Source of the DNA: Scyliorhinus canicula
Lineage: Eukaryota
Length of the DNA: 64,000 nucleotides
Direction of reading: 5' to 3'
Assembly (NCBI RefSeq): GCF_902713615.1
Contig: NW_024055498.1
Span: 4,520,554-4,584,553, forward strand
Each line of letters starts with the position of its first letter. Position 1 is the first letter of the stretch. Below the pieces are notes generated by a model. It made no database searches and had not been told where the DNA came from. It saw nothing but the letters and a program-made list of their open reading frames with translations. Shown here piece by piece: positions 25,597 through 57,410 of this stretch. Made by a program: the position numbers and the translations under genes.

Positions 25597-25621
25597 CCAC
25601 ACTGGCAGTTCCAGCTGCCGC

Positions 25622-25635
25622 TCAGCAGGGGGCGC
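25622..25635 (+). promoter_or_regulatory. CTCF-type motif TCAGCAGGGGGCGC about 25 bp 3' of the V6 nonamer
   Basis: Strong match to the CTCF core; positionally equivalent to the V4 site. Confidence 0.65.
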
Positions 25636-26800: not shown

Positions 26801-27289
26801 CCCTCCTCCCAAATCGGATGCTCATATGGCAATGAAAAGGCAGTGCATTTTCCCGAGTCAGTGTTGGTTACTGAGCGAGACACAGAATCGTTGAGCTGAG
26901 CCCCCACACCAGCAGGCCGTATCCTTCAATGGTGCGTCGATCCCAATGCCTCAGCCAGCTCACGGTACTTGCTGTCCTAGCATTATCACATCTTGCTTTA
27001 TTGCAGCAGAGAAATGCATTCCTCTGTTTGCCAGTGACACGCCAGTGAAAGACAAGGCCAGTAAAATTGGGCAGCCAATGCCTGGACATAAATATGTACG
27101 CGGAAATCCTGGAAGTTTGTCACTCGCGGAATTATTATAGCGCCAGGAATGTTATAGCACTCAGAATCACAGATGCACAGAACCACCAGTTCAGATGAGG
27201 CCTTCCGGTCAATTGAGTCTGCACCAACATGTAAAATATACAGGACTAACTACAGGAACTCATTTGTCAGCACGTGTTCCATAGCCTTG

Positions 27290-27740
27290 AATGTGGGGAC
27301 GTGTAATGTGCTCATCCAGGTACTATTTAATCGATGTGAAGCACACTGCCTCGACCACCCTCCCACGTAGTTTGCTCCAGATAGTCACCATCCTCCGAAT
27401 AAATAAGATTTTCCTCAAATCCCCATAACCTCCTGCCCCTCACCTTGAACTTGTGTCCCTTCGCAACTGACCCTTCAACGAAGGGGAACTGCTGCTCCCT
27501 ATCCACCCTGCCATGACCCTCGTAATCTTGTACACACAAGACTATGCAACTTCTCTTCATAACATACATGTTCCATCCCAGGAAACATCCTGGTGAATCT
27601 CCTCTGCACCCCCTCCAGTGCAATCACATCCTTCCTATAATGTGGCGCCCAGAATTGCACACAGTACTCCAGCTGTGGCCTCACGGCAGTTCTGTACAAC
27701 TCCAACATGATCTCCCTGCTTTTAGAATCCATGCCTCTAT
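27290..27740 (-). mobile_element. CR1-type LINE fragment
   Basis: Minus ORF LYRTAVRPQLEYCVQFWAPHYRKD. Confidence 0.88.
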
Positions 27741-29121: not shown

Positions 29122-29872
29122 GGGTTGTGTACGGGGCTTTAGGTTTTTTCTAACGCTGTTCCTCAGTGCGCAGTAATAGACCTCCCCATCCTCCACATCG
29201 AATGCACTTATACTGAGGTAACCGTTCTGTTTAGATTTGTCAGCAAACGCCAGATATCGTCCTGACCCCACATCTTTCTTCATTACTAAGGTGTTGGTGA
29301 TAATCCATCACGGTGGCTGTGCCGGTTTCTCCTGATATCATTGCATTTTGGACATGTTGGGGCCTTTATATTGGCAATTTAACTTCACCGAACCCCCTTC
29401 TGGGACAGCTATTGTCACTGCTGACTGGGCTACTGGATTACATATAGCCGGCCTGCGAAAGTGAAGGACTGAAATGAACAGATTGTTGTTCCTTTACAAA
29501 GTTAGAGTTTTTTCAATTAAGAGGTGCTTTTTAGCGTGGCCACTCCACTTAGCCTGTACATCTGGGTTGTGGGAGTGAGAATGTTCAAACACCACACCGC
29601 CAGTGATCTGGGACCGGGATCGAACCCGTGTCCTCAGTGCAATGAGGCAGCAGTGCCAACCATTGCGCCACCGTGCCGCCCTGAGTTTAAACAGAGTTGA
29701 TATAAATTTGCTTGTATCTGCGGCATTTTCTGGGACCTCTGATGCAGGCACTTCATAGACATTCCCGATCGTTAATTATACTCTAGCCTATGTGTATTAA
29801 TATGCTAATCTGGTTTAATTAACACTATAACTACTTCCTGTGCCAAAGCGCCGCCAGTATTATCACTAACAT
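29122..29872 (-). pseudogene. psiV7: TCR V pseudogene (family B); leader 29872-29839 (MLVIILAALWH, donor GG), V exon 29452-29161, RSS AACAGCG-23-ACACAACCC
   Basis: NPVAQSAVTIAVPEGGSVKLNC...MQ*YQEKP...P*...frameshift...DGEVYYCALR; stops, frameshifts, mutated heptamer. Confidence 0.9.
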
Positions 29873-30545
29873 GTCTGACTGAATCTCTCTCAGTGAACTG
29901 GACTGGACTGAGTCAGGGATTGTGTAGGAGAGAGGGAACTTCGTGCAGCGCAGGGAGAGGGTCTATTGTGACATCACTCGCCTCCCATCCTATCGGCTTG
30001 GCCGACACCATCGGGTGAGTTTCTGACGCCCGTGCTTGAATTTGGCGCCCTCTGCTGCCGGATTCGGTTTACTCCGTGTTAGAATTCGGCTGTTCAGTGG
30101 ATTCAGTGTTGGCTGCAATGCATATCAGGACGGGAAACCTAGACAGAAATCTAAATTTCAGCTGTTTATACACTATCTTTGTCACTATAGGTGTTTCTAA
30201 TCAAAAAACGATGCTTAATCTGTGCAAATCATCCCTGGAGTTCTCGGTTCACACTTTAGGACGAAGTCGAAAGAATGCCAAGACTTTCGGTGGACATGCG
30301 GAGGTTAGAACTCAGAATAATAGCACGGCTCAACAGACTAGTTTTCTTTATTTTGGTTCTGACGAAGAAGGTACAAAAGGGGAACTGCTCTGAACATCGC
30401 TTTTTTCAGAGACCAAATTGTCTGGAATTATTTTCATTAGCTGAAGGTGAAATGTCCTATAAAGAAATAGGTGAATGATATCTCATGCTGCAAGTGTTTG
30501 CGATGCAATGAAACGTTACAGAGGACTTTGAATGGATCAGCACCG

Positions 30546-30617
30546 AGGCACGGACGGGAGTCGAACCCGTGATGTTTGGTTTACGAAACCAACGCCTTTC
30601 CTCTTGGCCATCGCGCC
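30546..30617 (-). tRNA. tRNA-Thr(CGT), A7:C66 mismatch; possibly weak or pseudo
   Basis: GGCGCGATGGCCAAG...TTGGTTTCGTAAACCAA...ACGGGTTCGACTCCCGTCCGTGCCT; matches the vertebrate Thr-CGT body. Confidence 0.85.
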
Positions 30618-31154
30618 TTAGGCAAGTTAATGATGTTGATTGCACTGTGAGTTGTTATCATTTGGAGTCTGGCGCAACAATTGATGAGAGAAGAAGAATC
30701 AATAGAACATTTCAAAAAGTATTGTCAGAACTTGAGAACGGAAAACCCCGCGGGATTTAAATGCAGGGTGAAATGGGCAATAGAAAAAGTTATTTCAAAT
30801 AGGCGCAGGAAGCGTCAGTTCAATCTGCCCCCAGCCCTCCGACACTATATTCTTCTCAGTGAGTTGAGCAGGTGCCGGACGGTCACGGGATGCTGGGTGC
30901 TCAACTGTCGCTATTTCCGCTCCATCACTTGTGACTGCAGCTGATAACCGCCGCACAATTTTCAGCTTTGAGTCTGCGGTGCCCCGGTCACAGTTTCCGT
31001 CTGATGCCCTCGCTCCAACACCATTGGGATATTCTAGACATTGCTGCCGCTGCTCGATTCCTGTCATTGGTTGGATCAGCAATGCAGTGGGACCTGAATC
31101 TGGATTGCTGCTCTGACAGACAATTGCCTGCGCTAAAGAGCGATTCATTCAGGA

Positions 31155-31545
31155 ACGATCGCGGGGAACTGCCTCGTCACCCTCTTCGTTATGATCTCGC
31201 TACTCAGCATTTCCTTCACTGCAAAACCCCCATTCTCCCCTTACTGAGTAACCAGATATTATTGTTAATTAAATAATAATGAGTATGGTGCAGGTGACCG
31301 TTACGTTGGTCAATATGAGGCTGATTCTGAATTTTGAGATTATTATTGTTTTCTGTTCGTTTCTATCAGACTGGAGCCACCAAGACCCAGTGGAACATCT
31401 GGACGCTGAAATGAGGGTTGAAGACGATACTGACGCCACACAGCAGTACAATCGATACTGACGATCCTGATACACAGTCAGCATCCGGGCAGCCTCCACG
31501 GTTCATATTCCGTCTGATTGGAGAGAATATGCGTAGCAGCAAATG
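31155..31545 (+). pseudogene. psiV8: V1/V6-family pseudogene (ACG start, GC donor, internal deletions, 3' end missing)
   Basis: Leader-like TIAGNCLVTLFVMISLL; exon WSHQDPVEHLDAEMRVEDD...QPPRFIFRLIGEN; block D upstream. Confidence 0.8.
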
Positions 31546-31809
31546 TAGAATTGATCGCAATATGACACATATATAGAGAAATACCAGCACATAAATATAG
31601 AGATCGCTATATGTGTAGGTGCCGTCAATCACATTATAGCAGAAAGACAGTGGGTCCCAGAAACAAACCGACACCGAGAGGGGTAGGGGTATATGTGTGT
31701 GTGTGGGGGGGGGGGGGGGGGGGGTGATATTCATCTCTCAAGGTGGATGCGAGAGGGCGGTCAGAAAGACCATTGCCATTTATTATTATGTGAAAATGGC
31801 GCAAGACGG

Positions 31810-33712
31810 GTTATTGGGTTGGATTTGCTTATTATCGAGGTACAGTGAAAAGTATTTTCTGCAAGCAGCTCAACAGATCATTCAGTACATGGAAGAAGAG
31901 GGAATTAAACAAAATTCAACAAAATACAAGAAAATACATGGGACTACATAATAGGGCAACACAATATATACAATGTAACTACATGTGCATTGGCATCGGA
32001 TGAAGCATACAGGGTGTAGTGTTAATGAGGTCAGTCAATAAGAGAGTCATTTAGGAGTCTGGTGACAGTCGGGAAGAAGCTGTTTTTGAGTCTGTTCGTG
32101 CGTGTTCCCAAACTTCTGTATCTCCTGCCCGATGGAAGAAGTTGGAAAAGTGAGTAAGGCGGGTGGGAGGGATCCTTGATTATGCTGCCCTCTTTCCCCC
32201 ACAGCGGGAGGTGTAGATGGAGTCCATGGATGGGAGGCAGGTTCGTGTGATGGACTGGGCTATATTCACGACTCTCTGAAGTTACTTGCGGTCCTGGGCT
32301 GAGCAGTTGCCATACCAGGCTGTGATGCAGCCCGATAGGATGTTTTCTGTAGTGCACGTGTAAAAGTTGGTAAGGGTTAATGTGGACATGCCGAATTTCC
32401 TTAGTTTCCTGAGGAAGTGTGGGCGCTGTTGTGCTTTCTTAGTGATAGCGTCGACGTGAGTGGACCAGGACAGAGTATTGGTGATGTGCACCCCTAGGAA
32501 TTTGAAACTGCTAACCATCTCCACCTCGTCCACGTTGATGCTGACAGGGGTGTGTACAGTACTTTGCTTCCTGAAGTCGATGACCAGCTCTTTAGTTTTG
32601 CTGGCATTGAGGGAGAGATTGTTGTCGTTACACCACTCCACTAGGTTCTCTATCTCCCTCCTGTATTCGGACTCGTCGTTATTCAAGATCCGACCCACTC
32701 TGGTCGTATAGTCAGCCAACTTGTAGATGGAGTTGGAACCAAGTTTTGCCACGCAGTCGTGTGTGTACAGGGAGTAGAGTAGGGGGCTAAGTACCCAGCC
32801 TTGCGGGGCATCGGTATTGAGGACTATTGTGGAGGAGGTGTTGGTGTTCATTCTTACTGATTGTGGTCTGTTGGTCAGAAAGTCAAGGATCCAGTTGCAG
32901 AGTGGAGAGCCAAGTCCTAGGTTTTGGAGCTTTCATATGAGCTTGGCTGGGATTATGGTGTTGAAGGCGGAGCTGTAGTCAATAAATAAATGAACGAAAA
33001 ATGAAAATCACTTATTGTCACGAGTAGGCTTCAATGAAGTTACTGTGAAAAGCCCCGAGTCACCACATTCCGGCACCTGGTACAGGAATCGAACCGTGCT
33101 GTTGGCCTGCTTGGTCTGCTTTAAAAGCCAGCGATTTAGCCTGGTGAGCTTCACCAGCCCTTGGAGTCTGATGTAGGAGTCCTTGTTTTCCAGATGCTCT
33201 AGAGATGAGTGTAGGGCCAGGGAAATGGCGTCTGATGTGGACCGGTTGCGATGGTATGCGAACTGAAGTGGGTCAAGGCGTTCCAGGAGTATGGAGGTGA
33301 TGCGCTTCATGATCAGCCTCTCGAAGCACTTCATTACTACTGACGTCAGGGCCGCCGGAGGGTAGTCATTGAGGCATGTTGCCTCGTTCTTCTTTGGTAC
33401 CGGTATGATGGTGGTCTTCTTGAAGCAGGTGGGGACCTCGGTGTGGAGTAGGGATAGGTTAAAGATGTCTGTGAATACCTCTGCCAGCTGGTATGCGCAG
33501 GCTCTGAGTGCATGACCAGGGATCCCGTCCGGGCCCGTCGCCTTCCGTGGGTTCACTTTCAGGAAGGCCGATCTGACTTCGGAAACTTGATGGTGGGTAT
33601 GGGTGAATTAAGAGCTGCTGGGGCACTCGACAGCGGATTGTTGGTTACCTGCTCAAACCGAGCATAGAATGCATTAAGTTCGTCGGGAAAGGATGCGCTG
33701 CTGCCAGAGATA
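31810..33712 (-). mobile_element. Rex1/Babar fragment with internal deletion, interrupted by a short SINE (~32990-33160)
   Basis: Minus ORFs at 32282-32851 and 33008-33556 nearly identical to the 8547 ORF. Confidence 0.92.
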
Positions 33713-33880
33713 CAGTAAGAAGTCTTACAACACCAGGTTAAAGTCCAACAGGTTTGTTTCAAACACGAGCTTTCGGAGCGCAGCTCCTTCCTCAGGTGAA
33801 TCACAAAACAGAATCATTTAACCTGGTGTTGTAAGACTTCTTACTGTGCTCACCGCAGTCCAACGCCGGCATCTCCACAT
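33712..33880. repeat. Penelope-like terminal sequence forming a perfect 31-bp inverted repeat (33712-33742 / 33817-33847)
   Basis: acagtaagaagtcttacaacaccaggttaaa vs tttaacctggtgttgtaagacttcttactgt; same at ~52305-52440; plus-strand relative at 57795-57920. Confidence 0.75.
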
Positions 33881-34304
33881 CATGGCCAGAGATACTGCTC
33901 GACCCGGTCCGGTTATGTAGATCTTTGGGTTTTTTTTCTGAGGGATTTTTCTCCAGAGACCGCTGAGATAGGCCCGTTGAAGATTTTAAGACAGATGTGG
34001 TTGGATTCTCAACTGAAAAGGTAATCAAAGGTTATCCGGGGTCGGTGAAATGTGAATCTGAGGTCATGTTCGCATCTGTCACGAACTTATTGAATGTTGG
34101 AGAAGGCTCAAGGGGATGAATAGCCAACTCCTGCTCAACATTCGTCTGTTAGCAGGTCCGTGAGGAGGTGTCACAATCTCCTGAGTTATCGAGGGAGACA
34201 CAGCATCGTTGAGCTATTCCCCAGCTCGGCGCCATGAAGGATATTACAGCAATAGAGGCAACTCCATGCCGTAGCCGGTGCACGGTAGGTGTTATCAGAA
34301 CAGG

Positions 34305-34475
34305 AAAATCTCTTATTGTCACGAGTCCGCTTCAAATGAAATTACTCTGAAAATCCCCTAGTCGTCACATTCCGGCGCCTGTTCGGGGGGGCTGTTACGG
34401 GAATCGAACCGTGCTGCTGGCCTGCTTGGTCTGCTTTCAAAGCCAGCGATTTAGCCCTGTCCTAAACAGCCCCTA
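34305..34475 (-). mobile_element. Short tRNA-derived SINE; other copies ~52905, 57411(+), 58765, 60262(+), 61145, 62575
   Basis: Shared ggctaaatcgctggc...gcagaccaagcaggccagcagcacggttcgattcccgta head and (tttca)n tail. Confidence 0.8.
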
Positions 34476-34507
34476 AAAACATATCATCCAGGAGTGGAAC
34501 AACAATT

Positions 34508-34524
34508 CGTCTCTGGGTGGGATC

Positions 34525-34581
<57 letters not shown>
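34508..34581 (-). tRNA. tRNA-Asn(GTT), C6:A67 mismatch
   Basis: GTCTCCGTGGCGCAATCGGTTAGCGCGTTCGGCTGTTAACCGAAAGGTTGGTGGTTCGATCCCACCCAGAGACG; T5 tract about 30 nt downstream. Confidence 0.9.
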
Positions 34582-35219
34582 GACAACAGGATCACAACTC
34601 TGTGCATTTCAACAGTGACGGCCAATCCTCTGATTGCCAGGGACCGAATGAGAATGCTGGCAATATTGGTCCCCTGAGGCAGTGCGGAAAATATCTGGAA
34701 GGAGCGTACACATGGTCCCGCGGGCATGGACATTTGTGAGACGTGGAATCATCACAGGCCCGTGGATTTTACAGAACTCACTTGGACAGCACCACACTTT
34801 CGTTGAAACACGTCCCTTATCCGGGAACCTCCATAACAGAAAGCAGGAAATGTCAACATAGATTTGATGTATTTTCGATCAGAAAGTCGATGTTCCGCTG
34901 AAGACTACTGGGGGCTCAGACTCATTGGCATAAGGTCGACCTAAGTTAACGGTCCTGGAAGATTTTATTATCCCCACATCTGAGAACTTTCATTACTGCT
35001 GCTCGGAAGTGGATATTCCAAGCTTAAATTTACTGTGCATCGCGACATGCTGATTAATCTCACGAATCCGAAACGGCTCCTCTATTGACCTATACAAGGA
35101 CAGAGACGGCAATGCAATTGTGGAGAAAGAGACCTGAGTATTTTTCTGAATCCAGATCAAACCATCCTCCGGTACAAGGGCAGGAACGCAAATTTACTGG
35201 AATTGAAAATACTCTCTGA

Positions 35220-35500
35220 GGCTTTCGTACGTGGTTGTAGCTGCTTTGTGACACTGTGCTCATTGCACAGTAATAGACCGCTCCATCCTCCACACTGAGC
35301 GCGTTTATATTGAGGTAACCATTCTTTTTAGACTTGTTGGCAGCCGCCAGATATCGTCCTGAGATCTCCTCTTTCTTCATCGTCAATATGTTAATGATGA
35401 CCAATCTCGGCGGCTGTGCCGGCTTTTGCTGATACCATAGCATGTGGTACATCGTCCGGTCTGTATATTCGCAATCTAACTGCACTGAACCCCCTTCTGA
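35220..35500 (-). pseudogene. psiV9: 5'-truncated family-B V segment, open from mid-FR1 to RSS CACAGTG-23-ACGAAAGCC
   Basis: SEGGSVQLDCEYTDRTMYHMLWYQQKP...EDGAVYYCAMS; no leader or acceptor, start of FR1 replaced by a repeat. Confidence 0.9.
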
Positions 35501-35670
35501 TTTCTAACCTGCCCCGGTTTTAATGAAAGGTGATGGTGAAAGACGAACTTTGTTGTCCTGTCGACAAATGCCGCCTGATTGCCTGAGATGTTGCAGTACT
35601 TTTGGCGTTCTCCGCAGATGTTAGATTGATTTTCGATGGCAATGACAGTATGCTTTGGCTCTTTTCGCGG

Positions 35671-46482: not shown

Positions 46483-47309
46483 TCGCGTGATTCTCGTTTT
46501 GTGTGACGAATATTTGCACAAAATACCTTTCTTCCTCAATCACGCACGTTCGAGGAACATGATATTTGGTCTCTCATGAGATATTAAAATTCCTGCAACA
46601 AAGTCAGAAATACGGAATATTCAAGACGCCAGGGGAGGAAAAGCCTTCCCTATTTTGCCACGATCGGATATTAGCAGTTTGTTCATCCACCACAGAATCT
46701 TTTTGGTTTACAGATGCAGATGAACACATTTAATCACCATTTCAGACATGTCTAAATGTAGGATAAAAGCAACTTACTGCGGATGCGTCAATGGAAAAAA
46801 AAACAGAAAACACAGGACAGTCTCAGCAGGTCTGACAGCCTCTGTGGAGAGAGATGGCAAGTGTCGTTTCGAGTCTGGGTGACTCTTTGTCGAAGCTGGA
46901 CAACTGGATCTTTGGTCAGGTGTAGACTGGCGGAGTGTGTGGGGGAAGTGGAGGGTGGGTGGGTGAGTGGGGGGAGAGGGGAGCGTGAAGCATTGGGCCT
47001 CGACAGACGGCCAGCCATGGGTGGAGAATAACAAAAATGTGTTGGGTCGAAAGAAAAAGGGAATATAAATGTTTCTAATCAGTGTTAAGAACTGTGCTGA
47101 CAGGCGATTAGAAGATTAGAATGTGTTAATGGCAGATGAAAATGAGGAACAAGGGGCGGATTGCCCAAGAGGGATGCGATTGGCTAGGGGAATGGGGAGG
47201 GCGGGACAATGGGAGAGGAAGACCAAGACCAATGGAAGCAATGAAATTAAGTTGATGAAAATAAACATGTGGTGAAGTGGGAAGAGTGATTTTACGGTGC
47301 GAAGTTGTA

Positions 47310-47945
47310 GTCAATAAATAGGAGTCTGATGTAGGAGTCCTTGTTTTCGAGATGCTCTCGGGATGAGTGTCGGACCAGGGAAATGGCATCTGATGTGCAC
47401 TGGTTTCGACGGTATGCGAATTGAAGTGGGTCAAGGCATCCCGGGAGTATGGAGGTGATGCACTTCATGATCATCCTCTCGAAGCACTTCATTATAACTG
47501 ACGTCAGGGCCACCGGGCGGTAGTCATTGAGGCACGTTGCCTGGTTCTTCTTTGGTACCGGTATGATGGTGGTCTTCTTGAAGCAGGTGGGGACCTCGGA
47601 GTGGAGTAGGGATAGGTTAAAGATGTCTGTGAATACCTCTGCCAGCTGGTATGCACAGGCTCTGAGTGCACGACCAGGGATCCTGTCCCAGCCCATCGCC
47701 TTCCGTGGGTTCACTTTCAGGAAGGCCGATCTGACTTCGGAAACTTGATGGTGGGTATGGGTGAATTATGGGCTGCTGGGGCACTCGACCGCGGATTGCT
47801 GGTTACCTGCTCAAACCGAGCACAGAATGCATTTAGTTCATCGGGGAGGGGTGCGCTGCTGCCAGAGATACTACTCGGTTTCGCTTTGTAGCCCGTTATG
47901 TTGTTTAGTCCTTGCCACAACCGCCGAGAGTCTGTCTGTGACTGT
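47310..47945 (-). mobile_element. Rex1/Babar fragment at the right edge of the tRNA array
   Basis: Minus [28 protein letters not shown]...YRPVALTS. Confidence 0.92.
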
Positions 47946-48400
47946 AGCATCTGCGGAGAAAGCGGAAAATACTGGAACAACTCAGGGAGTCAGGCGGCAT
48001 TTGTCGAAAGGACAATAAAGCTCGGCTTTCACCATCATCTTTCATTAAAACCGGGACAGGTTAGAAATATAGGGCGTCTTAACCAAGTGAAATCCCGGAG
48101 GCAGCAAACAGAACAACAGGAAAGGGCTCTAATAGGGGACAAGTCAAGAGAGATTAAATGAGAAGAGGCCATTGGTTCCTGCCCACAAGGGGAGGTTCGC
48201 ATCAAATCAGAGAATGATTACACCACAGATTGAGTCCATTCCGCCCGCCGTGTCTGTGCCAGCTCTCTGTCAGATCAATGGAAGCAACAAATGTCTGTTG
48301 AGCTTCTTTGGAACAATTCAAAGTCCGAGGTCCGGGAGGTCAGCGTTTAGATCCAGTTCTCCAGTCAGTTCAATTCTCCACTTGGGCTCTGTGGATTAGA

Positions 48401-48466
48401 AGGGCGTTGGTCTAGGGGTATGATTCTCACTTTGGGTGTCTCGCTGTCGGAATTTGCGAGAGGTCC
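48401..48466 (+). pseudogene. 5' part of intron-containing tRNA-Pro(TGG), cut before the T arm at the duplication junction
   Basis: Intron tgtctcgctgtcggaatt 48437-48454, then GCGAGAGGTCC joined to agcaggccg. Confidence 0.85.
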
Positions 48467-50084
48467 AGCAGGCCGTATCCTTCAATGGTGCGGCGATCCC
48501 AATACTGCAGCCGGCTCACGGTACTTGTTATCACAACATTATCACATCTTGCTTTATTGCAGCAGAGAAATGCATTCCTCTGATTACCAGTGACACGCCA
48601 GTGAAAGACAAGGCCAGTAAAATTGGGCAGCCAATACCTGGACATAAATATGTACGCAGAAATCCTGGAAGTTTGTCACTCGCGAAATTATTATAGCGCC
48701 AGGAATGTTATAGCACCCAGAATCACAGATGCACAGAACCAAGCAATTCAGATGAGGCCTTCCGGTCAATCGAGTCTGCACCAACATGTGAAAAATACAG
48801 GACTAACTACAGGACCTCATTTGTCAGCACGTGTTCCATAGCCTTGAATGTGAAGACGTGCCATGTGTTCAGCCAGGTACTATTTAATGGATGTGAAGCA
48901 CACTGCCTCTACCACCCTCCCACCTAGTTTACTCCAAACAGTCACCATCCTCTGGCTAAATAAGATTTTCCTCAAATTCACCATAACCTCCTGCCCCTCA
49001 CCTTGAACTTGTGTCCCCCCGTAACTGACCCTTCAACTAAGGGGAACAACTGCTCCCTATCCACCCTGCCATGCCCCTCATAATCTTGTACACCCAAAAC
49101 TATGCAACGTCTCTTCATAACATAAATGGGCGCAGTATGTCCCTGATCTGCGTGGGAATCGAACAGAAGACATGTCGTGTCAACAGAAATTTCAGGTATT
49201 TTCGATCGAAAAATTGATTTCTATTAAAGTCTAAACCTGGCACCATGTGCTTCCCATGTCCCAACTGATAGTAATTCTCATGTTGCTCGGCGGTTATTAT
49301 ACATTAAGGGTACATTGTCATAATAATAATCTTCACTAGTGTCATAAGTAGGCATACATTAACACTGCAATGAAGTTACTGTGAAAATTCCCGAGTCACC
49401 ACACTCCGACCCCTGTTCAGGTACACAGAGGGAGAATTCAGAATGTCCAATTCACCTAACAGCACGTCTTTTCGGGACTTGTGGGAGGAAACCGGAGCAC
49501 CCGGAGGAAACCCACGCAGACACGGGGAGGACGTGCAGACTCCGCACGGATAGAGAACCATGCCGGGACTCGAACGCGGGTCCTAGGAGCATGAGGCAGC
49601 AGTGCAACCCACTGAACCACAGTGCCGCCCATTAAGTACCTTGTACATTTTGTACCGCAGCACGTATTGATCCATTCTGCTTTGCGTTAAAAGAACAGGT
49701 AACGAGGAGTCTTTGTCCTTGGACTTTCTGCAAGAGCAGGCCATGATTTTCGTCCATCTCCTCAGTTGAGTGCCACCCTCTGCCGGTAGGTAGATATTCT
49801 GGTTTTAAAGTTACAATACAATTTGCGGTATGATAGACCATAATAAGACCATAAGACTATTAGACATAGGAGCAGAATTAGGTCACTTGGCCCATCGAGT
49901 CCGCTCTGCCATTCAATCATGGCTGATATTTTCAACCATAGCTCTCAAGATTTCCCAAACTATTCCTCTCTTGATCGACACAAGGACAGAGACATGTCCG
50001 GTAAATAGACATGATTGCTTGCCTGAGCATGGGATCAATTCCTTCTCGGAAAGGAACCTCAGTGATGCTGTAAACACTCACTCA

Positions 50085-50835
50085 GGGTTGTGTACGGGGC
50101 TTTAGGTTTTCTCGAACGCTGTTTCTCAGTGCGCAGTAATAGACCGCCCCATCCTCCACATCGAATGCGCTTATACTGAGGTAACCGTTCTGTTTAGATT
50201 TGTCAGCAAACGCCAGATATCGTCCTGAACCCACATCTTTCTTCATTGCTGAGTTGTTGGTGATAATCCATCTCGGTGGCTGTGCCGGTTTCTCCTGATA
50301 TCATTGCATTTTGTTCATGTTGGGGCCTTTATATTGGCAATTTAATTTAATTGAAGCCCCTTCTGAGACTGTTATTGTCACTGGTGACTGAGATACTGGA
50401 TTGAACATTGCCGGCCTGCGAAAGTGAAGGACTGAAATGAACAGATTGTTGTTCCTTTATAAAGTTAGAGTTTGTTCAATTAAGAGGTGCTTTTTAGCGT
50501 GGCCACTCCACTTAGCCTGTACATCTAGGTTGTGGGAGTGAGAATGTTCAAACACCACACGGACAGTGATCTGGGACCGGGATCGAACCCGTGTCCTCAG
50601 TGCAATGAGGCAGCAGTGCCAACCATTGCGCCACCGTGCCACCCTGAGTTTAAACAGAGTTGATACAAATTTGCTTGTATCTGCGGCATTTTCTGGGACC
50701 TCTGATGCAGGCACTTCATAGACATTCCCGATCGTTAATTATACTCTAGCCTATGTGTATTAATATGCTAATCTGGTTTAATTACCACTATAACTATTTA
50801 CTGTGCCAAAGCGCCGCCAGTATTATCACAACCAT
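50085..50835 (-). pseudogene. psiV10: paralog of psiV7; leader 50835-50802 (MVVIILAALWH, GTAAAT donor), V exon 50415-50124
   Basis: NPVSQSPVTITVSEGASIKLNC...MQ*YQEKP...DGAVYYCALR; Trp41 TGA, frame offset after the acceptor, heptamer AACAGCG. Confidence 0.9.
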
Positions 50836-51483
50836 GTCTGACTGAATCTCTCGCAGTGAACTGGACTGGACTGAGTCAGGGATTGTGTAGGAGAGAGGGA
50901 ACTTAGTGCAGTGCAGGGAGAGGGTCTATTGTGACATCACTCGCCTCCCATCCTATCGGCTTGGCCGACACCATCAGGTGAGTTTCTGACGCCCGTGCTT
51001 GTATTTGGCGCCCTCTGCTGCCGGATTCGGTTTACTCCGTGTTAGAATTCGGCTGTTCAGTCGATTCAGTGTTGACTGCAATGCATATCAGGGCGGGAAA
51101 CCTAGACAGAAATCTAAATTCCAACTGTTTGTACACTATCTTTGTCACTATAGGTGTTTCTAATCAAAAAATGATGCTTAATCATCCCTGGAGTTCTCGG
51201 TTCACACCACGGATGCGACGAAGTCGAAAGAATGCCAAGACTTTGGTGGACATGCGGAGGTTAGAACTCAGAATAATAGCAGGGCTCAACAGACGAGCTT
51301 TCTTTATTTTGGTTCTGACGAAAAAGGGGAACGTTGCTTTTTTCAGAGACCAGATTGCCTGGAATTGTTTTCATTAGCTGAAGGTCAAATGTCCTATAAA
51401 GAAGATTGGTGAATGATATTTCATACAGCAAGCGTTTGTGAGACAATGAAACGTGACAGAGAACTTTGAATGGATCAGCACCG

Positions 51484-51555
51484 AGGCACGGGCGGGATTC
51501 GAACCCGCGATTTTTGGTTTACGAAACCAACGCCTTTCCTCTTGGCCACCGCACC
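51484..51555 (-). tRNA. tRNA-Thr(CGT), all stems paired
   Basis: GGTGCGGTGGCCAAG...TTGGTTTCGTAAACCAA...GCGGGTTCGAATCCCGCCCGTGCCT. Confidence 0.88.
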
Positions 51556-52092
51556 TTATGCAAGAAAGTGACGTTTATTGCACTGTGAGTTATTATCATT
51601 TGGAGTCTGGCGCAACAATTGATGAGAGAAGAAGAATCAATAGAACATTTCAAAAAGTATTGTCAGAACTTGAGAACGGAAAACCCCGCGGGATTTAAAT
51701 GCAGGTTGAAAAGGGCAATAGAAAAAGTTCTTTCAAATAGGCGCAGGTAGCGTCAGTTCAATCTGCCCCCACCCCTCCGACACTATATTGTTCTCAGTGA
51801 GTTGAGCAGGTGCAGGATGGTCACGGGCTGCTGGGTGCTCAGCTGTCGCTATTTCCGCCCCATCACTTGTGACTGCAGCTGATAACCGCCGCACAATTTT
51901 CAGCTTTGAGTCTGCGGTGCCCCGGTCACAGCTTCCATTTGATGGCCTCGCTCCAACACCATTGGGATATTCTAGACATTGCTGCCGCGGCTCGATTCCT
52001 GTCATTGGTTGGATCAGCAATGCAGTGGGACCTCAATCTGGATTGCTGCTCTGACAGATAATTGCCTGCGCTAAAGAGCGATTGATTCAGGA

Positions 52093-52305
52093 ACGATCGC
52101 GGGGAACTGCCTCGTCACCCTCTTCGTTATGATCTCGCTACTCAGTATTTCCTTCCCTGCCGATCTGACTTCGGAAACTGTGATGGTGGGTATGGGTGAA
52201 TTAAGGGCTGCTGAGGCACTCGACAGCGGATTGTTGGTTACCTGCTCAAACCGAGCATAGAATGCATTAAGTTCATCGGGAAGGGATGCGCTGCTGCCAG
52301 TGATA
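52093..52305 (+). pseudogene. Orphan V1-family leader (52093-52144, ACG start) fused to a minus-strand Rex1/Babar fragment; V exon deleted
   Basis: Identical to the psiV8 leader; after gtatttccttccc the sequence jumps to the Rex fragment seen at ~33566. Confidence 0.8.
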
Positions 52306-53100
52306 CAGTAAGAAGTCTTACAACACCAGGTTAAAGTCCAACAGGTTTGTTTCAAACACGAGCTTTCGGAGCGCAGCTCCTTCTTCAGGTGAATCACAAA
52401 ACAGAATCATTTAACCTGGTGTTGTAAGACTTCTTACTGTGCTCACCCCATTCCAACGCCGGCATCTCCACACCATGGCCAGAGATACTGCTCGACCCGG
52501 TCCGGTTATGTAGATCTTTGGGCTTTTTTTCTGAGGGATTCTTCTCCAGAGACCGCTGAGATAGGCCCATTGAAGATTTTAAGACAGATGTGGTTGGATT
52601 CTCAACTGAAAAGGTAATCAAAGGTTATCCGGGGAAGGTGAAATGTGAATCTGAGGTCATGTTCGAATCTGTCACGAACTTATTGAATGTTGAAGAAGGC
52701 TCAAGCGGATGAATAGCCAACTCCTGCTCAACATTCGTCTGTTGGCAGGTCCGTGAGGAGGCGTCACAATCCCCTGAGTTATCGAGGGACACACAACATC
52801 GTTGAGCGATTCCCCAGCTCAGCGCCATGAAGGATATTGCAGCGATAGAGGCAACTCCATGCCGCAGCCGGTGCACGGTACGTGTTATCAGAACAGGAAA
52901 ATCGCTTATTGTCACGAGTCGGCTTCAAATGAAATTACTCTGAAAATTCCCTAGTCGTCACATTCCGGCGCCTGTTCGGGGAGGCTGTTACGGGAATCGA
53001 ACCGTACTGCTGGCCTGCTTGGTCTGCTTTCAAAGCCAGCGATTTAGCCCTGTCCTAAACAGCCCCTAAAAACATATCATCCAGGAGTGGAACAACAATG

Positions 53101-53174
53101 CGCCTCTGGGTGGGATCGAACCACCAACCTTTCGGTTAATAGCCGAACGCGCTAACCGATTGCACCACGGAGGA
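53101..53174 (-). pseudogene. tRNA-Asn pseudogene (anticodon GTT to ATT, damaged 5' end)
   Basis: Paralog of 34508-34581. Confidence 0.85.
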
Positions 53175-53802
53175 TCGCAACTCTGTGCATTTCAACAGTG
53201 ACGGCCAATCCTCTGATTGCCAGGGACCGAATGAGAATGCTGGTAATATTGGTCCCCTGAGGCAGGGCTGAAAATATCTGGAAGGACCGTACACATGGTC
53301 CCGCGGGCATGGACATTTGTGAGACGTGGAATCATCACAGGCGCGTGGATTTTACAGAACTCACTTGGACAGCACCACACTTCCGTTAAAACACGTCCCT
53401 TATCCGGGAACCTCCATAACAGAAAGCAGGAAGTGTCAACATAGATTTGATGTATTTTCGATCAGAAAGTCGATGTTCCGCTGAAGACTACTGGGGGCTC
53501 AGACTCGTTGGCATAAGGTCGACTTAAGTTAGCGGCCCTGGAAGATTTTATTATCCCCACATCTGAGAACTTTCATTACTGCTGCTCGGAAGTGGATATT
53601 CCAAGTTTAAATTTACTGTGCATCGCGACATGCTGATTAAACTCACGAATCCGAAACGGCTCCTCTATTGACCCACACAAGGACAGAGAAGGCAATGCAA
53701 TTGTGGAGAAATAGACCTGAGTATTTTTCTGAATCTAGATCAAACCATCCTCCGGTACAAGGGCAGGAACGCAAATTTGCTGGAATTGAAAATACTCTCT
53801 GA

Positions 53803-54045
53803 GGCTTTCGTACGTGGTTGTAGCTGCTTTGTGACACTGTGCTCATTGCACAGTAATAGACCGCCCCGTCCTCCACACTGAGCGCGTTTATATTGATATC
53901 GTCCTGAGATCGCCTCTTTCTTCATCGTCAATATGTTAATGATGCCCAATCTCGGCGGCTGTGCCGGCTTTTGCTGATACCAGAGCATGTGGTACATCGT
54001 CCGGTCTGTATATTCGCAATCTAACTGCACTGAACCCCCTTCTGA
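53803..54045 (-). pseudogene. psiV12: paralog of psiV9 with an internal FR3 deletion; RSS CACAGTG-23-ACGAAAGCC retained
   Basis: QLDCEYTDRTMYHMLWYQQKP...ISGRY jumps to NINALSVEDGAVYYCAMS. Confidence 0.9.
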
Positions 54046-54215
54046 TTTCTAACCTGTCCCGGTTTTTATGAAAGGTGTCGGTGAAAGACGAACTTTGTTG
54101 TCCTGTCGACAAATGCCGCCTGACTGCCTGAGATGTTGCAGTACTTTTGGCGTTCTCCGCAGATGTTAGATTGATTTTCGATGGCAATGACAGTATGCTT
54201 TGACTCTTTTCGCGG

Positions 54216-54305
54216 GGCTCGTTGGTCTAGGGGTATGATTCTCGCTTTGGGTGTGTTTCTGTTGGAATTTTTGAGAGGTCCTGGGTTCAAATGCCGGACG
54301 AGCCC
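54216..54305 (+). pseudogene. Intron-containing tRNA-Pro(TGG), intron 54252-54269, stem mismatches
   Basis: GGCTCGTTGGTCTAGGGGTATGATTCTCGCTTTGGG + 18 nt + TTTGAGAGGTCCTGGGTTCAAATGCCGGACGAGCCC. Confidence 0.85.
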
Positions 54306-54936
54306 TTCGATGAGGTTTCCCGTTGGTCAAGCCGCATGTTTTCTTCATTTCTTTGCGGCGGAAACGGCGGGATTCATTCACATTGGGTTTGCTTTGAGAA
54401 GCTGAGCTTGAACTGCATGGAACCAATACGTTCCCGAGAAGCTTGTCTACGTGTGGGCATTCACATTTCTATTGACTAATTCTGGTGGACTCAGACAGCT
54501 CTTTGTCCCTTTCATTTTATCAGTTCAACAACTTCAGACTGTGAACTCTCACTTCCCCCTCCACCACATGTTTTCTCCATCAACTTATCATCCCTTCCAT
54601 TGATATGTTTTATCCTCAGCATTGCCCACCTCTCCCCAGCCCATACCATCCTACTTCAGCAATCTGATCCCTGTTTGTAATTGTTCTCTGACGCACTGAT
54701 TACCTTTGTTCTGCCATTAACACATTCTGACCGCTTTATGCGCCATCAGCACCTTTCATAGCCTTGATTAGCCTCATTTACATTCCCTTTTTCTTTCTGT
54801 CCGAGACATTTTCGTCATTTCCCACCTATTGCTAGCCCTCTATCGAGGCCCAATACAGCACTCCACCAGCCCCACCCCCACCCACAATCGTCTGAATCTC
54901 CAGTTCCAATTCTCCAGCTTTGACAAAGAGTCCACT

Positions 54937-55121
54937 TTTTTTTTTAAATTTAGATTACCCAATTATTGTTTCTATTAAGGGGGCAATTTAACGTGGCCAA
55001 TCCACCTACTCTACACATTTTTGGGTTGTGGGGGCGGAACCCACGCAGACACGGGGAGAATGTACAAACTCCACACGGACAGTGACCCAGAGCCGGGATC
55101 GAACCTGGGACCTCAGCGCCG
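54937..55121 (-). mobile_element. 5'-truncated V-SINE with a 15-bp target-site duplication gacaaagagtccact
   Basis: TSD at 54922-54936 and 55122-55136; empty site in the paralog at ~36382. Confidence 0.9.
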
Positions 55122-55175: not shown

Positions 55176-57410
55176 CGTGTAGGTTCGTTATTTACAGAGG
55201 TCTCTGGATAGTATATCCTTATTTAGTGTGGTCCCTGGCCAGTATATCATTATTTCCAGTGGTCCCTGGTAAAATGTCATTCTTTTCACTGGCCCCTGTA
55301 TAGTACATCATTATTTACAACGGTCCCAGCGTGTAATTTCATTATTTACAGTTGTCCCTGGGTAGTATATCATTATTTACAGTGGTCCCTGTGTTGTATA
55401 TCATTAGTTACAGTGGTCCCTGGGTAGTGTATCATTATTTACAGTGGTCCCTGACTACTATTCTATTATTTCAGTGGTCCCTGGGCAGTATATCATTATT
55501 TACAGTGGTCCCTGGGTAGGATATCATTATTTACAGTGTCCCTGGTTACTATTCTATTATTTAAGTGGCCCCTGGGCAGTATATAATTATTTACTGTGGT
55601 CCTTGGGTAGTATATCATTACTTACAGCGGTCCCTGGGTAGGATATCATTATTGACAGTGGTCCCTGTGTAGTATATCATTATTTACAGTGCTCCCTGTG
55701 TAGTTTATCATAATTTACAGTGGTCCCTGGGTAGGATATCATTATTTACAGTGGTCCCTGTGTAGTATATCATTATTTACATGGTCCCTGTGTAGTGTAT
55801 CATTATTTACAGTGGTCCCTGTCTACTATTCTACCATATCAGTTGTCCCAGGGCAGTATGCCATTATTTACAGCGGCCCAGTTGTAGTACATCATTATTT
55901 GCAACGGTCCGAGCGTGTGATTTCATTATTTACAGGCGGCCCTGGATACTATATCATTATTTGCAATGGTTCCTGGGTAGTATATCATTATTTACAATGG
56001 ACCGTGGGTGGCATGTCATTATTTACAGTGGTCCCTGGACAGTATATCATTATTTACAGTGGTCCCTGGATAGTATATCATTATTTACAGTGGCCCCTGG
56101 GCAGTATATCATTATATACAGTGGTCCCGTGTCATATATCTTGATTTAATTTCGTTTAATTTCGTTTGATTTAGTTATTTGCTGGCGCCCTAGGTAGGAT
56201 ATTTTATTTACAGTCGTCACTGTGTAGTACGTCATTATATACAGCGGCCCAGCGTGTAGGTTCGTTATTTACAGAGATCTCTGGATAGTATATCCTTATT
56301 TAGAGTGGTCCCTGGCCAGTATATCATTATTTCCAGTGGTCCCTGGTAAAATGTCATTCTTTACACTGGCCCCTGTATAGTACATCATTACTTACAACGG
56401 TCCCAGCGTGTAATTTCATTATTTACAGTGGTCCCTGTGTAGTATATCATTAGTTACAGTGGTCCCTGGGTAGTGTATCATTATTTACAGTGGTCCCTGT
56501 GTAGTATATCATTATTTACAGAGGACCCTGGATAGTATATCATTATTTACAGTGGCCCCTGGGTAGTATATCATTATTTACAGTGGTCCCTGTGTAGTAT
56601 ATCATTAGTTACAGTGGTCCCTGGGTAGTGTATCATTATTTACAGTGGTCCCTGACTACTATTCTATTATTTCAGTGGTCCCTGGGCAGTATATCATTAT
56701 TTACAGTGGTCCATGGGTAGGATATCATTATTTACAGTGTCCCTGGCTACTATTCTATTATTTAAGTGGCCCCTTGGCAGTATATAATTATTTACTGTGG
56801 TCCTTGGGTAGTATATCATTATTTACAGTGGTCCCTGGGTAGGATATCATTATTTACAGTGGTCCCTGTGTAGTATATCATTATTTACAGTGGTCCCTGG
56901 GTAGTGTATCATTATTTACAGTGTTCCCTGGCTACTATTCTACTATATCAGTTGTCCCAGGGCAGTATGCCATTATTTACAGCGGTCCAGTTGTAGTACA
57001 TCATTATTTACAACGGTCCGAGCGTGTGAATTCGTTATTTATAGTGGTCCTGGATATTACATCATTATTTATAGTGGTCCCTGGGTAGTATATCATTATT
57101 TACAGAGGTCCCTGGGTAGTATATCATTATTTACAGAGGTCCCTGGGTAGTATATCATTATTTGCCGTGGTATCTTGGCAATATATCATTATTTACAGAT
57201 GTCCTCTGAAGTTCATCATTATTTACCAAGGTCCTAGGGTGGAATTTCATTATTAACAGTGCTCCCTGGAAACTATATTATCATTTACAGTGATCACCGG
57301 GTGATATATCTTTATTTACAGTGTTGCCTGTGTAGTATGCCATTATTTACAGTGGCCCTCGGTAGTATATCATTAGTACAGTGGTCCCTGGGTAGAATAT
57401 CATTATTTTA
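55176..57410. repeat. 31-bp satellite (tagtatatcattatttacagtggtccctggg) with ~1.1-1.2 kb higher-order duplication
   Basis: Visible periodicity; diagnostic variants recur at 55176/56251 and 55454/56654. Confidence 0.95.

Follow-up and report, generated by a model that had tools for sequence, protein, structure and literature searches.

V segments in the window

The window, i.e., the whole stretch of 64,000 nucleotides of Scyliorhinus canicula DNA that was analyzed, contains both V segments and tRNA genes (Table 1). Five V-set exons on the + strand (at approximately 3.0, 14.5, 20.0, 22.5, and 25.3 kb) are open, with plausible leaders and an RSS with a 22-23-nt spacer, and all of them lie to the left of the first tRNA, where an earlier sequence-only reading of this DNA had placed five intact V segments. 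The description of the region as a TCR V array is borne out for these + strand segments by their best PDB matches, one of which is ambiguous. For the exon at 20.0 kb (V20k), 17 close paralogs are present at other places in the genome; none of them has a stop, and 15 keep the 146-codon frame.

The V segments inside the tRNA zone had all been described as disabled, and this is the case for the four relics found, which carry stops or a frameshift and are all on the - strand. These relics form a separate, antibody-VH-like class on the strand opposite to that of the intact V segments, a feature that had been missed. Two V pseudogenes located outside the tRNA zone, at 4658-4881 and 26828-26932, had also been overlooked.

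tRNA genes, pseudogenes, and fragments

Between 30.5 and 54.3 kb, ARAGORN, Rfam RF00005, and an intron-allowing search, together with a truncated Pro 5' half at about 48401, give 21 tRNA genes, pseudogenes, or fragments, with two SINE heads counted apart, which is close to the 20 originally proposed. The types present are Thr, Asn, Pro with an 18-nt insert, Val-CAC, Arg-ACG, Val-TAC, and Val-AAC, and approximately six of the 21 look intact. ARAGORN reports 15 tRNAs between 30545 and 53174, whereas RF00005 gives 14 matches above the gathering score in the window and, at E<=1, six further tRNA matches, one of which (36796-36857) is above the gathering score; two more Pro-type genes, with an 18-20-nt insert, come from the intron-allowing search, at 35670-35761 and 54215-54306. 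Two ARAGORN candidates for a tRNA-Phe(aaa), at 57412 and 61245, lack Rfam support, and the Rfam search turned up neither 5S nor snRNA genes in the window. The SINE to which both heads belong has at least 5,532 dispersed copies genome-wide.

Table 1. Coordinates of the features in the window, in order of position.
Feature	Position	Strand	Remarks
Intact V exon, V3k type (V25k family)	3048-3320	+	Leader ~2818; RSS CACACTG, 22-nt spacer, ACAAAAACC
V pseudogene	4658-4881		Left of first tRNA
Intact V exon (V14k)	14515-14808	+	Best PDB match human TCR delta variable 3
Intact V exon (V20k)	20040-20333	+	Best PDB matches TCR alpha V domains
Intact V exon, TCR-alpha-like	22480-22749	+	Perfect RSS23 at 22747-22784
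Intact V exon (V25k)	25262-25558	+	Best PDB matches antibody light chain, then Vdelta1/TRA
V pseudogene	26828-26932		Left of first tRNA
Block A, copy 1	26909-36398		Thr, LINE insertion, SINE head, Asn, VH-like V pseudogene, Pro
VH-like V pseudogene, type 2	29164-29400	-	Two in-frame stops
tRNA-Thr(CGT)	30546-30617	-	55.4 bits; 6 changes from family consensus; A7-C66 mismatch; no T4 run within 40 nt
5'-truncated LINE (reverse transcriptase)	31833-33713	-	Same family as element at 8547-11063
tRNA-derived SINE head, not a tRNA gene	34389-34471	-	83 nt
tRNA-Asn(GTT)	34508-34581	-	65.7 bits; identical to cassette consensus
VH-like V pseudogene, type 1	35255-35503	-	TAG stop in FR1 just upstream (35504-35506); RSS23 CACAGTG ... 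ACGAAAGCC
tRNA-Pro(TGG)	35671-35760	+	18-nt insert at intron position; 7 changes from family consensus
tRNA-Val(CAC) pseudogene	36796-36857	-	Deletion in T-arm
tRNA-Arg(ACG)	36927-36999	-	59.4 bits; identical to family consensus; T4 run at +11
Tandem array of 2.3-kb unit (Val-TAC, Arg-ACG, Val-AAC)	37231-47308	+	~4.3 units
Hybrid tRNA-Val pseudogene	37559-37631	+	Upstream flank of Val-TAC type, downstream flank of Val-AAC type
tRNA-Pro, truncated	48401-48466	+	5' half
Block A, copy 2	48465-54937		91-96% identical to copy 1
VH-like V pseudogene, type 2	50127-50366	-	In-frame stop in common with the copy at 29164
tRNA-Thr(CGT)	51484-51555	-	64.2 bits; identical to family consensus
Second SINE head, tRNA-like	52982-53064		83 nt
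tRNA-Asn, anticodon mutated to ATT	53101-53174	-	5 changes from consensus; likely pseudogene
VH-like V pseudogene, type 1	53833-54048	-	Internal deletion and frameshift
Pro-type tRNA gene with insert	54216-54305	+	Anticodon stem damaged

Tandem amplification and recombination

The tandem amplification of a 2.3-kb Val-Arg-Val unit is real, with units that are spaced by 2273-2335 bp and are 92-98% identical to one another; their tRNAs start at 38924, 39091, 39493, 41198, 41421, and 41828, and then at 43532, 43691, 44087, 45841, 46008, and 46410. This array is flanked by a second, larger duplication, the two copies of block A, the second of which is missing the truncated LINE found in the first.

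The hybrid tRNA-Val pseudogene has flanks of two different types, and a crossover therefore occurred within the tRNA body; the stretch that contains it matches scaffold C87 at 98.7%. The proposal that the tDNAs drive duplication is thus partly supported at this small scale, but not for the large block, the ends of which are not within tRNAs.

Copies of the cassette across the genome

The block of V segments and tRNAs recurs as a cassette, with an identity of 91-99%, on more than 30 scaffolds, most of which are small (C35-C644), and collinear stretches reach 8.4 kb at 95.5%. For the Thr module, at least 45 matches (91-97%) are spread over approximately 30 contigs, while the VH-like V gives 150 scored matches among 1,186 candidates, some of them, on C86, C94, and C90, with 100% identity. 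Within two mismatches, there are at least 134 copies of Val-TAC and at least 97 of Arg-ACG genome-wide, almost all on scaffolds C35-C644, and the VH-like V is present on 23 of the 32 listed Val-TAC contigs.

The 2.3-kb unit is also found on C262, C66, C83, C53, C69, and C84, and arrays with a spacing of 2.27-2.31 kb on C84, C85, and C87. Gene order and orientation are as in the window on C262, C66, C69, C86, and C87, the tandem unit is as in the window on C83 and C53, and the right flank of C106 shows both layout and tandem unit. On C86, C83, and C53, the tRNA blocks are preceded or followed, at a distance of no more than a few kb, by intact alpha/delta-type V segments.

Given that nearly all of the copies are on small scaffolds, some of them may be uncollapsed haplotypes or the result of assembly over-expansion. 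It is very unlikely, however, that the arrangement as a whole is an artefact of chimeric joins, uncollapsed haplotypes, or over-expanded repeats, even though this would agree with the restriction to small scaffolds, with the presence on C62 of the V14k, V20k, Thr, and VH-like modules in the order of the window at 92-99% identity (most 97-99%), and with the V20k stretch, for which the best DNA run of the species contains only 26% of the sampled words. The adjacency of V segments and tRNAs recurs independently on many scaffolds, the copies are 3-9% apart and differ in module number, insertions, and inversions, which is excessive for haplotypes or a duplicated assembly, and the window contains no N. 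The region probably represents a single copy of a modular, segmentally duplicated cassette that has been amplified many-fold in the 4.2-Gb genome.

Origin of the V lesions

The TAG stop in the FR1 of the VH-like V is common to six copies on five scaffolds, and this lesion is therefore older than the amplification. Together with the W-to-stop change shared by both type-2 copies in the window, it indicates that the lesions were inherited with the cassette, and the idea that the tDNAs drive V pseudogenization is not supported. Fork pausing or recombination at the tDNAs of this site might have disabled the V segments inside the zone, as all four of the relics there are disabled and tDNAs do recombine, to judge from the one crossover within a tRNA body, but such an origin is extremely improbable in view of the shared stops, the existence of V pseudogenes outside the zone, and the fact that the disabled relics are a distinct, VH-like class.

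Divergence and possible use of the tRNA copies

In 18 aligned units, which have shared ancestry, substitutions per site amount to 0.0296 in the tRNA bodies and 0.0341 in the flanks (p=0.17), and copies identical to the consensus number six of 18 for Val-TAC, one of 18 for Arg, and four of 18 for Val-AAC. These values bear on the possibility that the arrays are a selected and actively used supply of tRNAs, for large oocytes or early embryos, for example, with the V segments as passengers. In favor of a supply role, the consensus tRNAs fold as regular cloverleafs, with sequences nearly identical to those of human Val-AAC, Arg-ACG, Asn-GTT, and Pro-TGG. Exact-consensus copies number 45 for Val-TAC and 18 for Arg-ACG genome-wide, T4 terminators are found at +11 to +16 in Arg and some Val-AAC copies, and zebrafish chromosome 4R (PMC11075544) and the reported abundance of elasmobranch tRNAs (bioRxiv 10.1101/2025.06.08.657570) provide precedents.

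On the other hand, the divergence of the bodies equals that of the flanks, and the exact-consensus fraction of Arg-ACG (18 of 97) is close to the neutral Poisson expectation of approximately 0.18 derived from the measured substitution rate. Many copies have broken stems or altered anticodons, and the Val-TAC and Thr copies have no T4 run within 40 nt. A selected supply is thus a possible but rather doubtful explanation of the arrays.

Proposed chromatin boundary

It had also been proposed that the tDNAs form a boundary at the edge of the locus, and a TFIIIC/Pol III boundary or open-chromatin domain delimiting the usable V array would be in line with the B box (GGTTCGANNCC) kept in most tRNA copies, with the tDNA insulators established in yeast and mammals, and with the position of the five intact V segments of the window, all on one side of the zone. 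The human tandem tRNA array at 1q23.3 has itself been proposed as a boundary element (PMC4041453). A further hint, weak and non-robust, is the slower decay of CpG in the tRNA bodies than in the flanks, as the deficit of CpG changes is marked at the cell level (p=1.6e-5) and could reflect tDNAs that are unmethylated and occupied, but disappears in the column-by-column comparison, where it is not significant (p=0.25).

The zone, however, is not an edge: tRNAs and another VH-like V continue within 30 kb to the right of the window, and V-like matches occur at 0.78-1.49 Mb and at 4.60 Mb of the same 4.93-Mb scaffold. The recurrence of the V/tRNA block on more than 30 scaffolds, where intact V segments lie a few kb or less before or after it, the lack of a strict CTCF core in the motif search of the tRNA zone, unlike the human array, and tRNA bodies that are not conserved beyond their flanks also argue against a boundary, which is an unlikely role for this cluster. 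As the whole block is repeated on dozens of scaffolds, the mixture of V segments and tRNAs at the locus is better ascribed to co-duplication than to a special boundary.

Proposed history of the cassette

The amplified cassette comprises TCR alpha/delta-type V segments, still open and with RSS, VH-like V pseudogenes in reverse orientation, and a Pol III tRNA gene cluster formed by Thr, Asn, intron-bearing Pro, Val-CAC, and Arg-ACG, together with the 2.3-kb Val-TAC/Arg-ACG/Val-AAC tandem unit. The interleaving of V segments and tRNAs results from their joint duplication, with the disabling lesions of the VH-like V already in the ancestral cassette. Following this co-duplication, unequal crossing-over, with at least one event inside a tRNA-Val body, altered the copy number of the modules, and most tRNA copies drifted at an approximately neutral rate, the consensus being kept in only about a quarter to a third of them. 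The intact minority is probably transcribed and would feed the very large elasmobranch pool of tRNA genes.

Comparison with known systems

Both of the 83-nt elements of the window belong to the tRNA-derived SINEs. The Val, Arg, Thr, Asn, and Pro genes, in contrast, match the full tRNA model (1-71), and tRNA genes occur in 97-134 copies, almost wholly on cassette scaffolds and duplicated with their flanks; given the full-length match, the confinement to cassettes, and the copied flanks, the tRNA genes were not retroposed.

VH-type V segments are known from the shark TCR alpha/delta locus or its vicinity (TAILV; antigen-receptor complex of PMC12227049), and the window is similar in having VH-like V segments with RSS23 among alpha/delta-type V segments. 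Here, however, they are pseudogenes that run opposite to the alpha/delta-type V segments and sit inside tRNA modules, and the main text of that study does not contain the term "tRNA".

According to the Squalomix preprint (bioRxiv 10.1101/2025.06.08.657570), tRNA loci are unusually numerous in sharks and rays, are clustered, and in many cases contain introns, which fits both the arrays and the insert-bearing Pro-TGG genes of the window. The clusters of that preprint are tied to histone clusters instead, and neither "T cell receptor" nor "immunoglobulin" appears in its text.

Region-2 of the long arm of zebrafish chromosome 4 combines tRNA genes with expanding multigene families, ZNF and immune NLR (PMC11075544), and is thus likewise a duplication-rich compartment that pairs tRNA genes with fast-expanding families. 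The immune partner in the shark is the V segment of rearranging receptors rather than the NLR, and the 5S and snRNA genes are not seen in the window. If transcribed, the intact tRNA copies would be comparable to the tandem tRNA arrays known from frogs and from zebrafish chromosome 4.

The human tandem array at 1q23.3 (PMC4041453) shares the head-to-tail arrangement of a multi-kb tRNA unit, the variable copy number, and the instability. It differs in its 7.3-kb unit, its single locus, its binding of CTCF via a conserved motif, and its lack of antigen-receptor V segments, whereas the shark array has a 2.3-kb unit and no strict CTCF core and lies within a V-containing cassette on more than 30 scaffolds. 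The kind of system to which the shark locus belongs, tandem tRNA arrays in segmental duplications, is already known.

Repeat Layers and Recombination within tRNA Genes

Self-comparison of the window, combined with a repeat finder, defined three layers of repetition. A large block, referred to here as block A, is present in two copies with an identity of 91-96%, and between them lies a tandem array in which a 2.3-kb unit is repeated head to tail ~4.3 times at 92-98% identity, every unit carrying a Val-TAC, an Arg-ACG, and a Val-AAC tRNA gene, which bears out the tandemly amplified Val-Arg-Val unit described in an earlier, sequence-only reading of this DNA. The coordinates of these and the other features are collected in the table. 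The LINE fragment in block A copy 1, which is related to the longer LINE near the left of the window, is also present in the cassette on contig C86 of the same assembly, but block A copy 2 lacks it.

The most informative feature of the tandem array is found in its first, short unit, at 37559-37631, where a tRNA is flanked upstream by sequence with 81-90% identity to the flanks of the Val-TAC genes and only 30-58% to those of Val-AAC, and downstream by sequence with 84-92% identity to the Val-AAC flanks and only 36-45% to those of Val-TAC. This switch of flanks shows that a crossover occurred inside the 73-nt body of the tRNA-Val and removed the intervening Arg gene. The 1.2-kb stretch that carries the hybrid (36974-38164) has a 98.7% match to another scaffold, C87. 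The hybrid tRNA-Val provides direct sequence evidence for tRNA bodies as crossover points in arrays, and tRNA-mediated recombination is supported at this small scale. The earlier proposal that the tRNA genes drive duplication in this region is supported in part, for exchange within arrays; block A, however, ends in non-tRNA sequence, beside a LINE fragment and a satellite.

Further repetitive sequences were observed around these layers. Block A copy 2 is bordered on its right by the 31-bp satellite, and the region at 59-62 kb is found again, inverted, in the left flank of the window on the same contig. The ~150-nt inverted-repeat hairpin gave weak matches to miRNA families on both strands, well under the gathering scores, and is probably a MITE-like element that was copied along with block A.

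Repeats, tRNA genes, V segments, and motifs of the window
Feature	Position	Strand	Remark
Block A, copy 1	26909-36398
Block A, copy 2	48465-54937
Tandem 2.3-kb array	37231-47308
LINE	8547-11063	+	endonuclease and reverse transcriptase, 838-codon open frame
5'-truncated LINE	31833-33713	-	reverse transcriptase; interrupts block A copy 1, inside the cassette
Truncated LINE copy	47299-47948		inside the cassette
Satellite	4984-6248		35-bp unit x36
Satellite	55188-57408		31-bp unit x72, 154-bp higher order
Satellite	59224-59924		87-bp unit x8
Inverted-repeat hairpin	33705-33855, 52300-52446
tRNA-Thr(CGT)	30546, 51484	-	ARAGORN/Rfam
tRNA-Asn(GTT)	34508	-	ARAGORN/Rfam
tRNA-Asn, mutated to ATT	53101	-	ARAGORN/Rfam
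tRNA-Arg(ACG)	36927	-	ARAGORN/Rfam
tRNA-Arg(ACG)	39091, 41421, 46008	+	ARAGORN/Rfam
tRNA-Val(TAC)	43532, 45841		ARAGORN/Rfam
Mutated Val(TAC) copy, now read as Ile(TAT)	38924		ARAGORN/Rfam
tRNA-Val(AAC)	39493, 41828, 44087, 46410		ARAGORN/Rfam
Damaged tRNA copies	36796, 37559, 41198, 43691
Pro(TGG)-type genes	35671-35760, 54216-54305		18-20-nt insert; ARAGORN, introns allowed (starts 35670/54215)
5' half of Pro(TGG)-type gene	~48401-48466
Undamaged-looking tRNAs	Asn 34508; Arg 36927; Val-AAC 41828, 39493; Val-TAC 45841; Thr 51484
SINE heads, 83 nt	34389, 52982		weak Rfam matches
Open V exons	~3.0, 14.5, 20.0, 22.5, 25.3 kb	+
V relics of the tRNA zone	29164-29400, 35255-35503, 50127-50366, 53833-54048	-
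Further V pseudogenes	4658-4881, 26828-26932		outside the tRNA zone
Strict CTCF-core matches	2001-2014, 6480-6493, 23225-23238

The tRNA Genes of the Window

ARAGORN and Rfam were concordant on a dense set of tRNAs at 30.5-53.2 kb, with 14 Rfam matches in the window at 34-67 bits (gathering score 29), each covering model positions 1-71. In total, 21 tRNA genes, pseudogenes, or fragments were counted, close to the 20 reported previously, and ~6 of these 21 appear undamaged, judging by the family consensus and the cloverleaf pairing. The B box (GGTTCGAAACC or GGTTCGACTCC) is retained in most copies, and T4 terminators follow the Arg copies and some of the Val-AAC copies; no T4 terminator was found within 40 nt after the Val-TAC or Thr copies. 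When the tandem array was scanned for promoters and terminators of bacterial type, hits were at chance level, and the tool is irrelevant to Pol III genes.

Some candidates were set aside. The two 83-nt elements were rejected as tRNA genes based on their genome copy number, being the heads of a tRNA-derived SINE of which all chromosomes carry copies, at least 5,532 altogether, and the ARAGORN calls of tRNA-Phe(aaa) at 57412 and 61245 were rejected because they lie beside satellites, without Rfam support. A SINE origin of the Val, Arg, Thr, Asn, and Pro genes was also rejected: genome-wide, the Val-TAC consensus has 134 copies within two mismatches (45 exact) and Arg-ACG has 97 (18 exact), almost all on the scaffolds C35-C644 that carry the cassettes and not on the chromosome-scale contigs, so that the Val and Arg genes are not dispersed in the manner of SINEs.

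The Pro(TGG) family presents an 18-nt insert at the intron position, which also occurs at other loci of the genome; the insert sequence is itself conserved across scaffolds, the truncated 5'-half variant is recurrent, and the consensus of 18 copies reads, once the insert is removed, like a standard vertebrate Pro-TGG. In the Arg-ACG genes of the arrays, position 37 is A and positions 44-45 are GG, whereas those on the chromosome-scale contigs (C9:4113250, C108:5085393, C17:131632046) have G37, which indicates that the arrays encode a distinct Arg-ACG isodecoder. The copies on C9 and C108 appear identical to human Arg-ACG.

Two Classes of V Segments

The five V exons on the + strand are open (Pfam V-set E-values of 3e-10 to 6e-17), with plausible leaders and RSSs with 22-23-nt spacers. 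Among solved structures (PDB), the best match of V20k and V22k (the segments being named by their position in kb) is TCR alpha, and that of V14k is TCR delta variable 3 (TRDV3), while V25k matches an antibody light chain best and then Vdelta1, and is ambiguous. The identification of TCR V segments from the sequence is thus supported for three of the four tested, which are closest to TCR alpha/delta.

All four relics of the tRNA zone are disabled by an FR1 stop, in-frame stops, or a frameshift, as the sequence-only reading had stated of the V segments there. The best preserved of them, the second, kept its RSS23 (CACAGTG, 23 nt, ACGAAAGCC) and has a TAG stop in FR1. Given that the PDB structures it matches best are nanobodies and antibody VH domains rather than TCR V domains, the disabled relics are assigned to a separate, VH-like class; these class assignments follow the best PDB matches only, since word-index protein searches with the VH-like V and V20k returned no match. 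The relics resemble the VH-type V segments of the TCR delta locus (TAILV) in being VH-like, with an RSS23, and located among TCR V segments, but they have no functional open V exon. VH-type V segments are known in or near the TCR alpha/delta loci of sharks (PMC12227049).

A search of the window for J segments or Ig cluster remnants found neither a J motif nor a strict RSS12. No RNA run was confirmed to contain V20k. Four poly-A RNA runs, of which 1-34% each was read, contained no V-exon reads over 19800-25700 and are uninformative on V usage; only partial reads were found, at 21362-21396 and 23589-23627, and these were taken as repeat fragments.

Amplification of the Cassette across the Genome

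The assembly has 4.22 Gb in 646 contigs, with the window at 4520554-4584553 of a contig of 4.93 Mb (C106), and the modules of the window recur widely in it. For the 1.5 kb around the Thr gene, ~30 contigs gave at least 45 matches at 91-97%. Of 1,186 candidates for the VH-like V, 150 were scored as matches, and on three other scaffolds a copy is 100% identical. The 2.3-kb unit also forms arrays on C262, C66, C83, C53, C69, and C84, and arrays with a spacing of 2.27-2.31 kb are found on C84, C85, and C87. Among the 32 contigs in the Val-TAC listing, 23 have the VH-like V as well.

The layout was compared in 170 kb from eight other places in the assembly, and five of them (C262, C66, C69, C86, and C87) share the order Thr(-), Asn(-), VH-like V(-), Pro(+), and Val-CAC or Arg(-), where the VH-like V was scored only if open enough for the motif search. 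From there, C66, C69, and C262 run on into repeated Val-TAC/Arg/Val-AAC units (+), and tandem units of this type are also found on C53 and, inverted, on C83. The collinear blocks reach up to 8.4 kb at 95.5%. The copy number of the modules varies between cassettes, for example on C262 and C66, where the Pro/Val-CAC module is repeated, and this variation fits ongoing unequal exchange.

The open V segments take part in this process. Outside the window, 17 full-length copies of the V20k region were found at 93-97%, on the same set of scaffolds, and alpha/delta-type V segments are co-amplified along with the tRNA modules. On C62, the order of the window is preserved, with V14k at 99%, V20k at 97%, Thr at 92%, and the VH-like V at 99%, in a block that may have been duplicated very recently or may represent an uncollapsed haplotype. 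The modules shared between C62:140943-160918 and positions 14000-35503 of the window span at least 20 kb. Overall, more than 1,100 candidates for alpha/delta-type V segments included at least 146 matches at E<=1e-20; the majority of these are open, and almost all are on C35-C644. The 17 closest V20k paralogs have no stops (0/17), and 15 of them retain the same 146-codon open frame, a pattern that suggests either constraint on the V segments or very recent copying.

Divergence of the tRNA Copies

For the tRNAs themselves, 18 Val-TAC/Arg/Val-AAC units from seven places were aligned, and the differences from the consensus per site were 0.0296 in the tRNA bodies and 0.0341 in the flanks (Fisher p=0.17), or 0.0287 and 0.0305, respectively, when only non-CpG sites were considered. 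The exact consensus was found in 6/18 units for Val-TAC, 1/18 for Arg, and 4/18 for Val-AAC, and the exact Arg-ACG copies, 18 of the 97 within two mismatches genome-wide, compare with a neutral Poisson expectation of ~0.18 (our own calculation from the measured rate). In a per-cell count, CpGs appeared to decay more slowly in the bodies of the tRNAs than in their flanks (p=1.6e-5); a protection of the bodies was rejected as evidence because a per-column test showed no significant difference (p=0.25).

Many of the changes in the tRNA bodies break stems or alter the anticodon, and as a result ARAGORN reads such array copies as Ile, Ala, Cys, Trp, or His. The anticodon point mutants observed on Val, Arg, and Asn bodies are Ile-TAT, Ile-AAT, Ala-TGC, Cys-ACA, Trp-CCA, His-ATG, and Asn-ATT. 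If any of these were expressed, they would mis-decode, and automatic scans will miscount the isotypes.

Taken together, the region is probably a segmental-duplication cassette in which V and tRNA modules were co-amplified, with the tRNA copies mostly drifting.

Proposed Boundary and Pseudogenization Roles

Two functional roles had been suggested for the tRNA genes, and neither is supported. The first was a Pol III boundary or open-chromatin domain at the edge of the locus. The supposed edge is not one, as the next 30 kb beyond the right end of the window hold further tandem units and, after them, Asn(-) and a VH-like V(-), V-like matches occur elsewhere on the same contig (at 0.78-1.49 Mb and 4.60 Mb), and in other cassettes (C86, C83, and C53) intact alpha/delta-type V segments are located a few kb before or after the tRNA block. 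The tRNA zone (30.5-54.3 kb) yielded no strict CTCF core in a motif scan of the window. The strict matches that do occur in the window number three, against 0.02 by chance, and all are in its V part.

The second role, the pseudogenization of the V segments by the neighboring tRNA genes, is contradicted by lesions held in common among the copies: the TAG in FR1 is present in six of the six in-frame VH-like copies, on five scaffolds, and a W-to-stop change is common to both copies of type 2, one of the two kinds of VH-like pseudogene. The lesions of the VH-like V are older than the amplification.

Implications and Comparison with Known Systems

The small scaffolds that carry the cassettes are taken to be unplaced, and a large share of the TCR alpha/delta-type V segments of the genome lies in these tRNA-rich duplicated cassettes. 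Given that the V segments are mostly in such scaffolds, V counts and locus maps based on placed chromosomes alone would be badly incomplete, and the usable V repertoire may far exceed that suggested by them. The cassettes are predicted to form one or a few chromosomal blocks beside the TCR alpha/delta-IgH complex, for which C17:131.6-133.5 Mb, with V-like and Arg-ACG-variant matches, is a candidate location. The cassettes also provide a concrete picture of the growth of tRNA gene numbers in elasmobranchs, through the DNA-level amplification of multi-gene modules, in which many array copies are decaying, some with changed anticodons, so that the raw counts of tRNA scans would overstate the functional set.

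A more far-reaching reading, that the linkage of tRNA arrays and V segments was inherited from a tRNA cluster of an ancestral proto-MHC/antigen-receptor complex, with the tDNA arrays acting as an engine of V-cassette duplication in elasmobranchs, is improbable. If it were true, recombination-prone tDNA arrays would inflate the elasmobranch V repertoire to hundreds of segments. A comparable pairing is present at two places in humans, with the tRNA/ZNF/butyrophilin cluster of 6p22 beside the MHC and a Thr/Pro/Leu/Tyr tRNA cluster at 14q11.2, ~1 Mb from TRA. The co-amplified cassette with mostly drifting tRNA copies, preferred here, demonstrates no new mechanism.

Literature searches yielded no account of tRNA arrays intermixed with the V segments of TCRs. 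The tRNA loci of elasmobranchs are reported to be exceptionally numerous, clustered, and often intron-containing (2025 preprint, 10.1101/2025.06.08.657570), and the terms “T cell receptor” and “immunoglobulin” are absent from the text of that study. Tandem multi-tRNA arrays are already known in vertebrates, and the closest described case found to the array of the window is that of human 1q23.3, which is variable in copy number and unstable (PMC4041453). The human array differs in being a single locus with a conserved CTCF site, whereas the array of the window is without a strict CTCF core. On a larger scale, zebrafish chromosome 4R is a compartment rich in both tRNAs and duplications, which is shared with fast-evolving gene families (PMC11075544).
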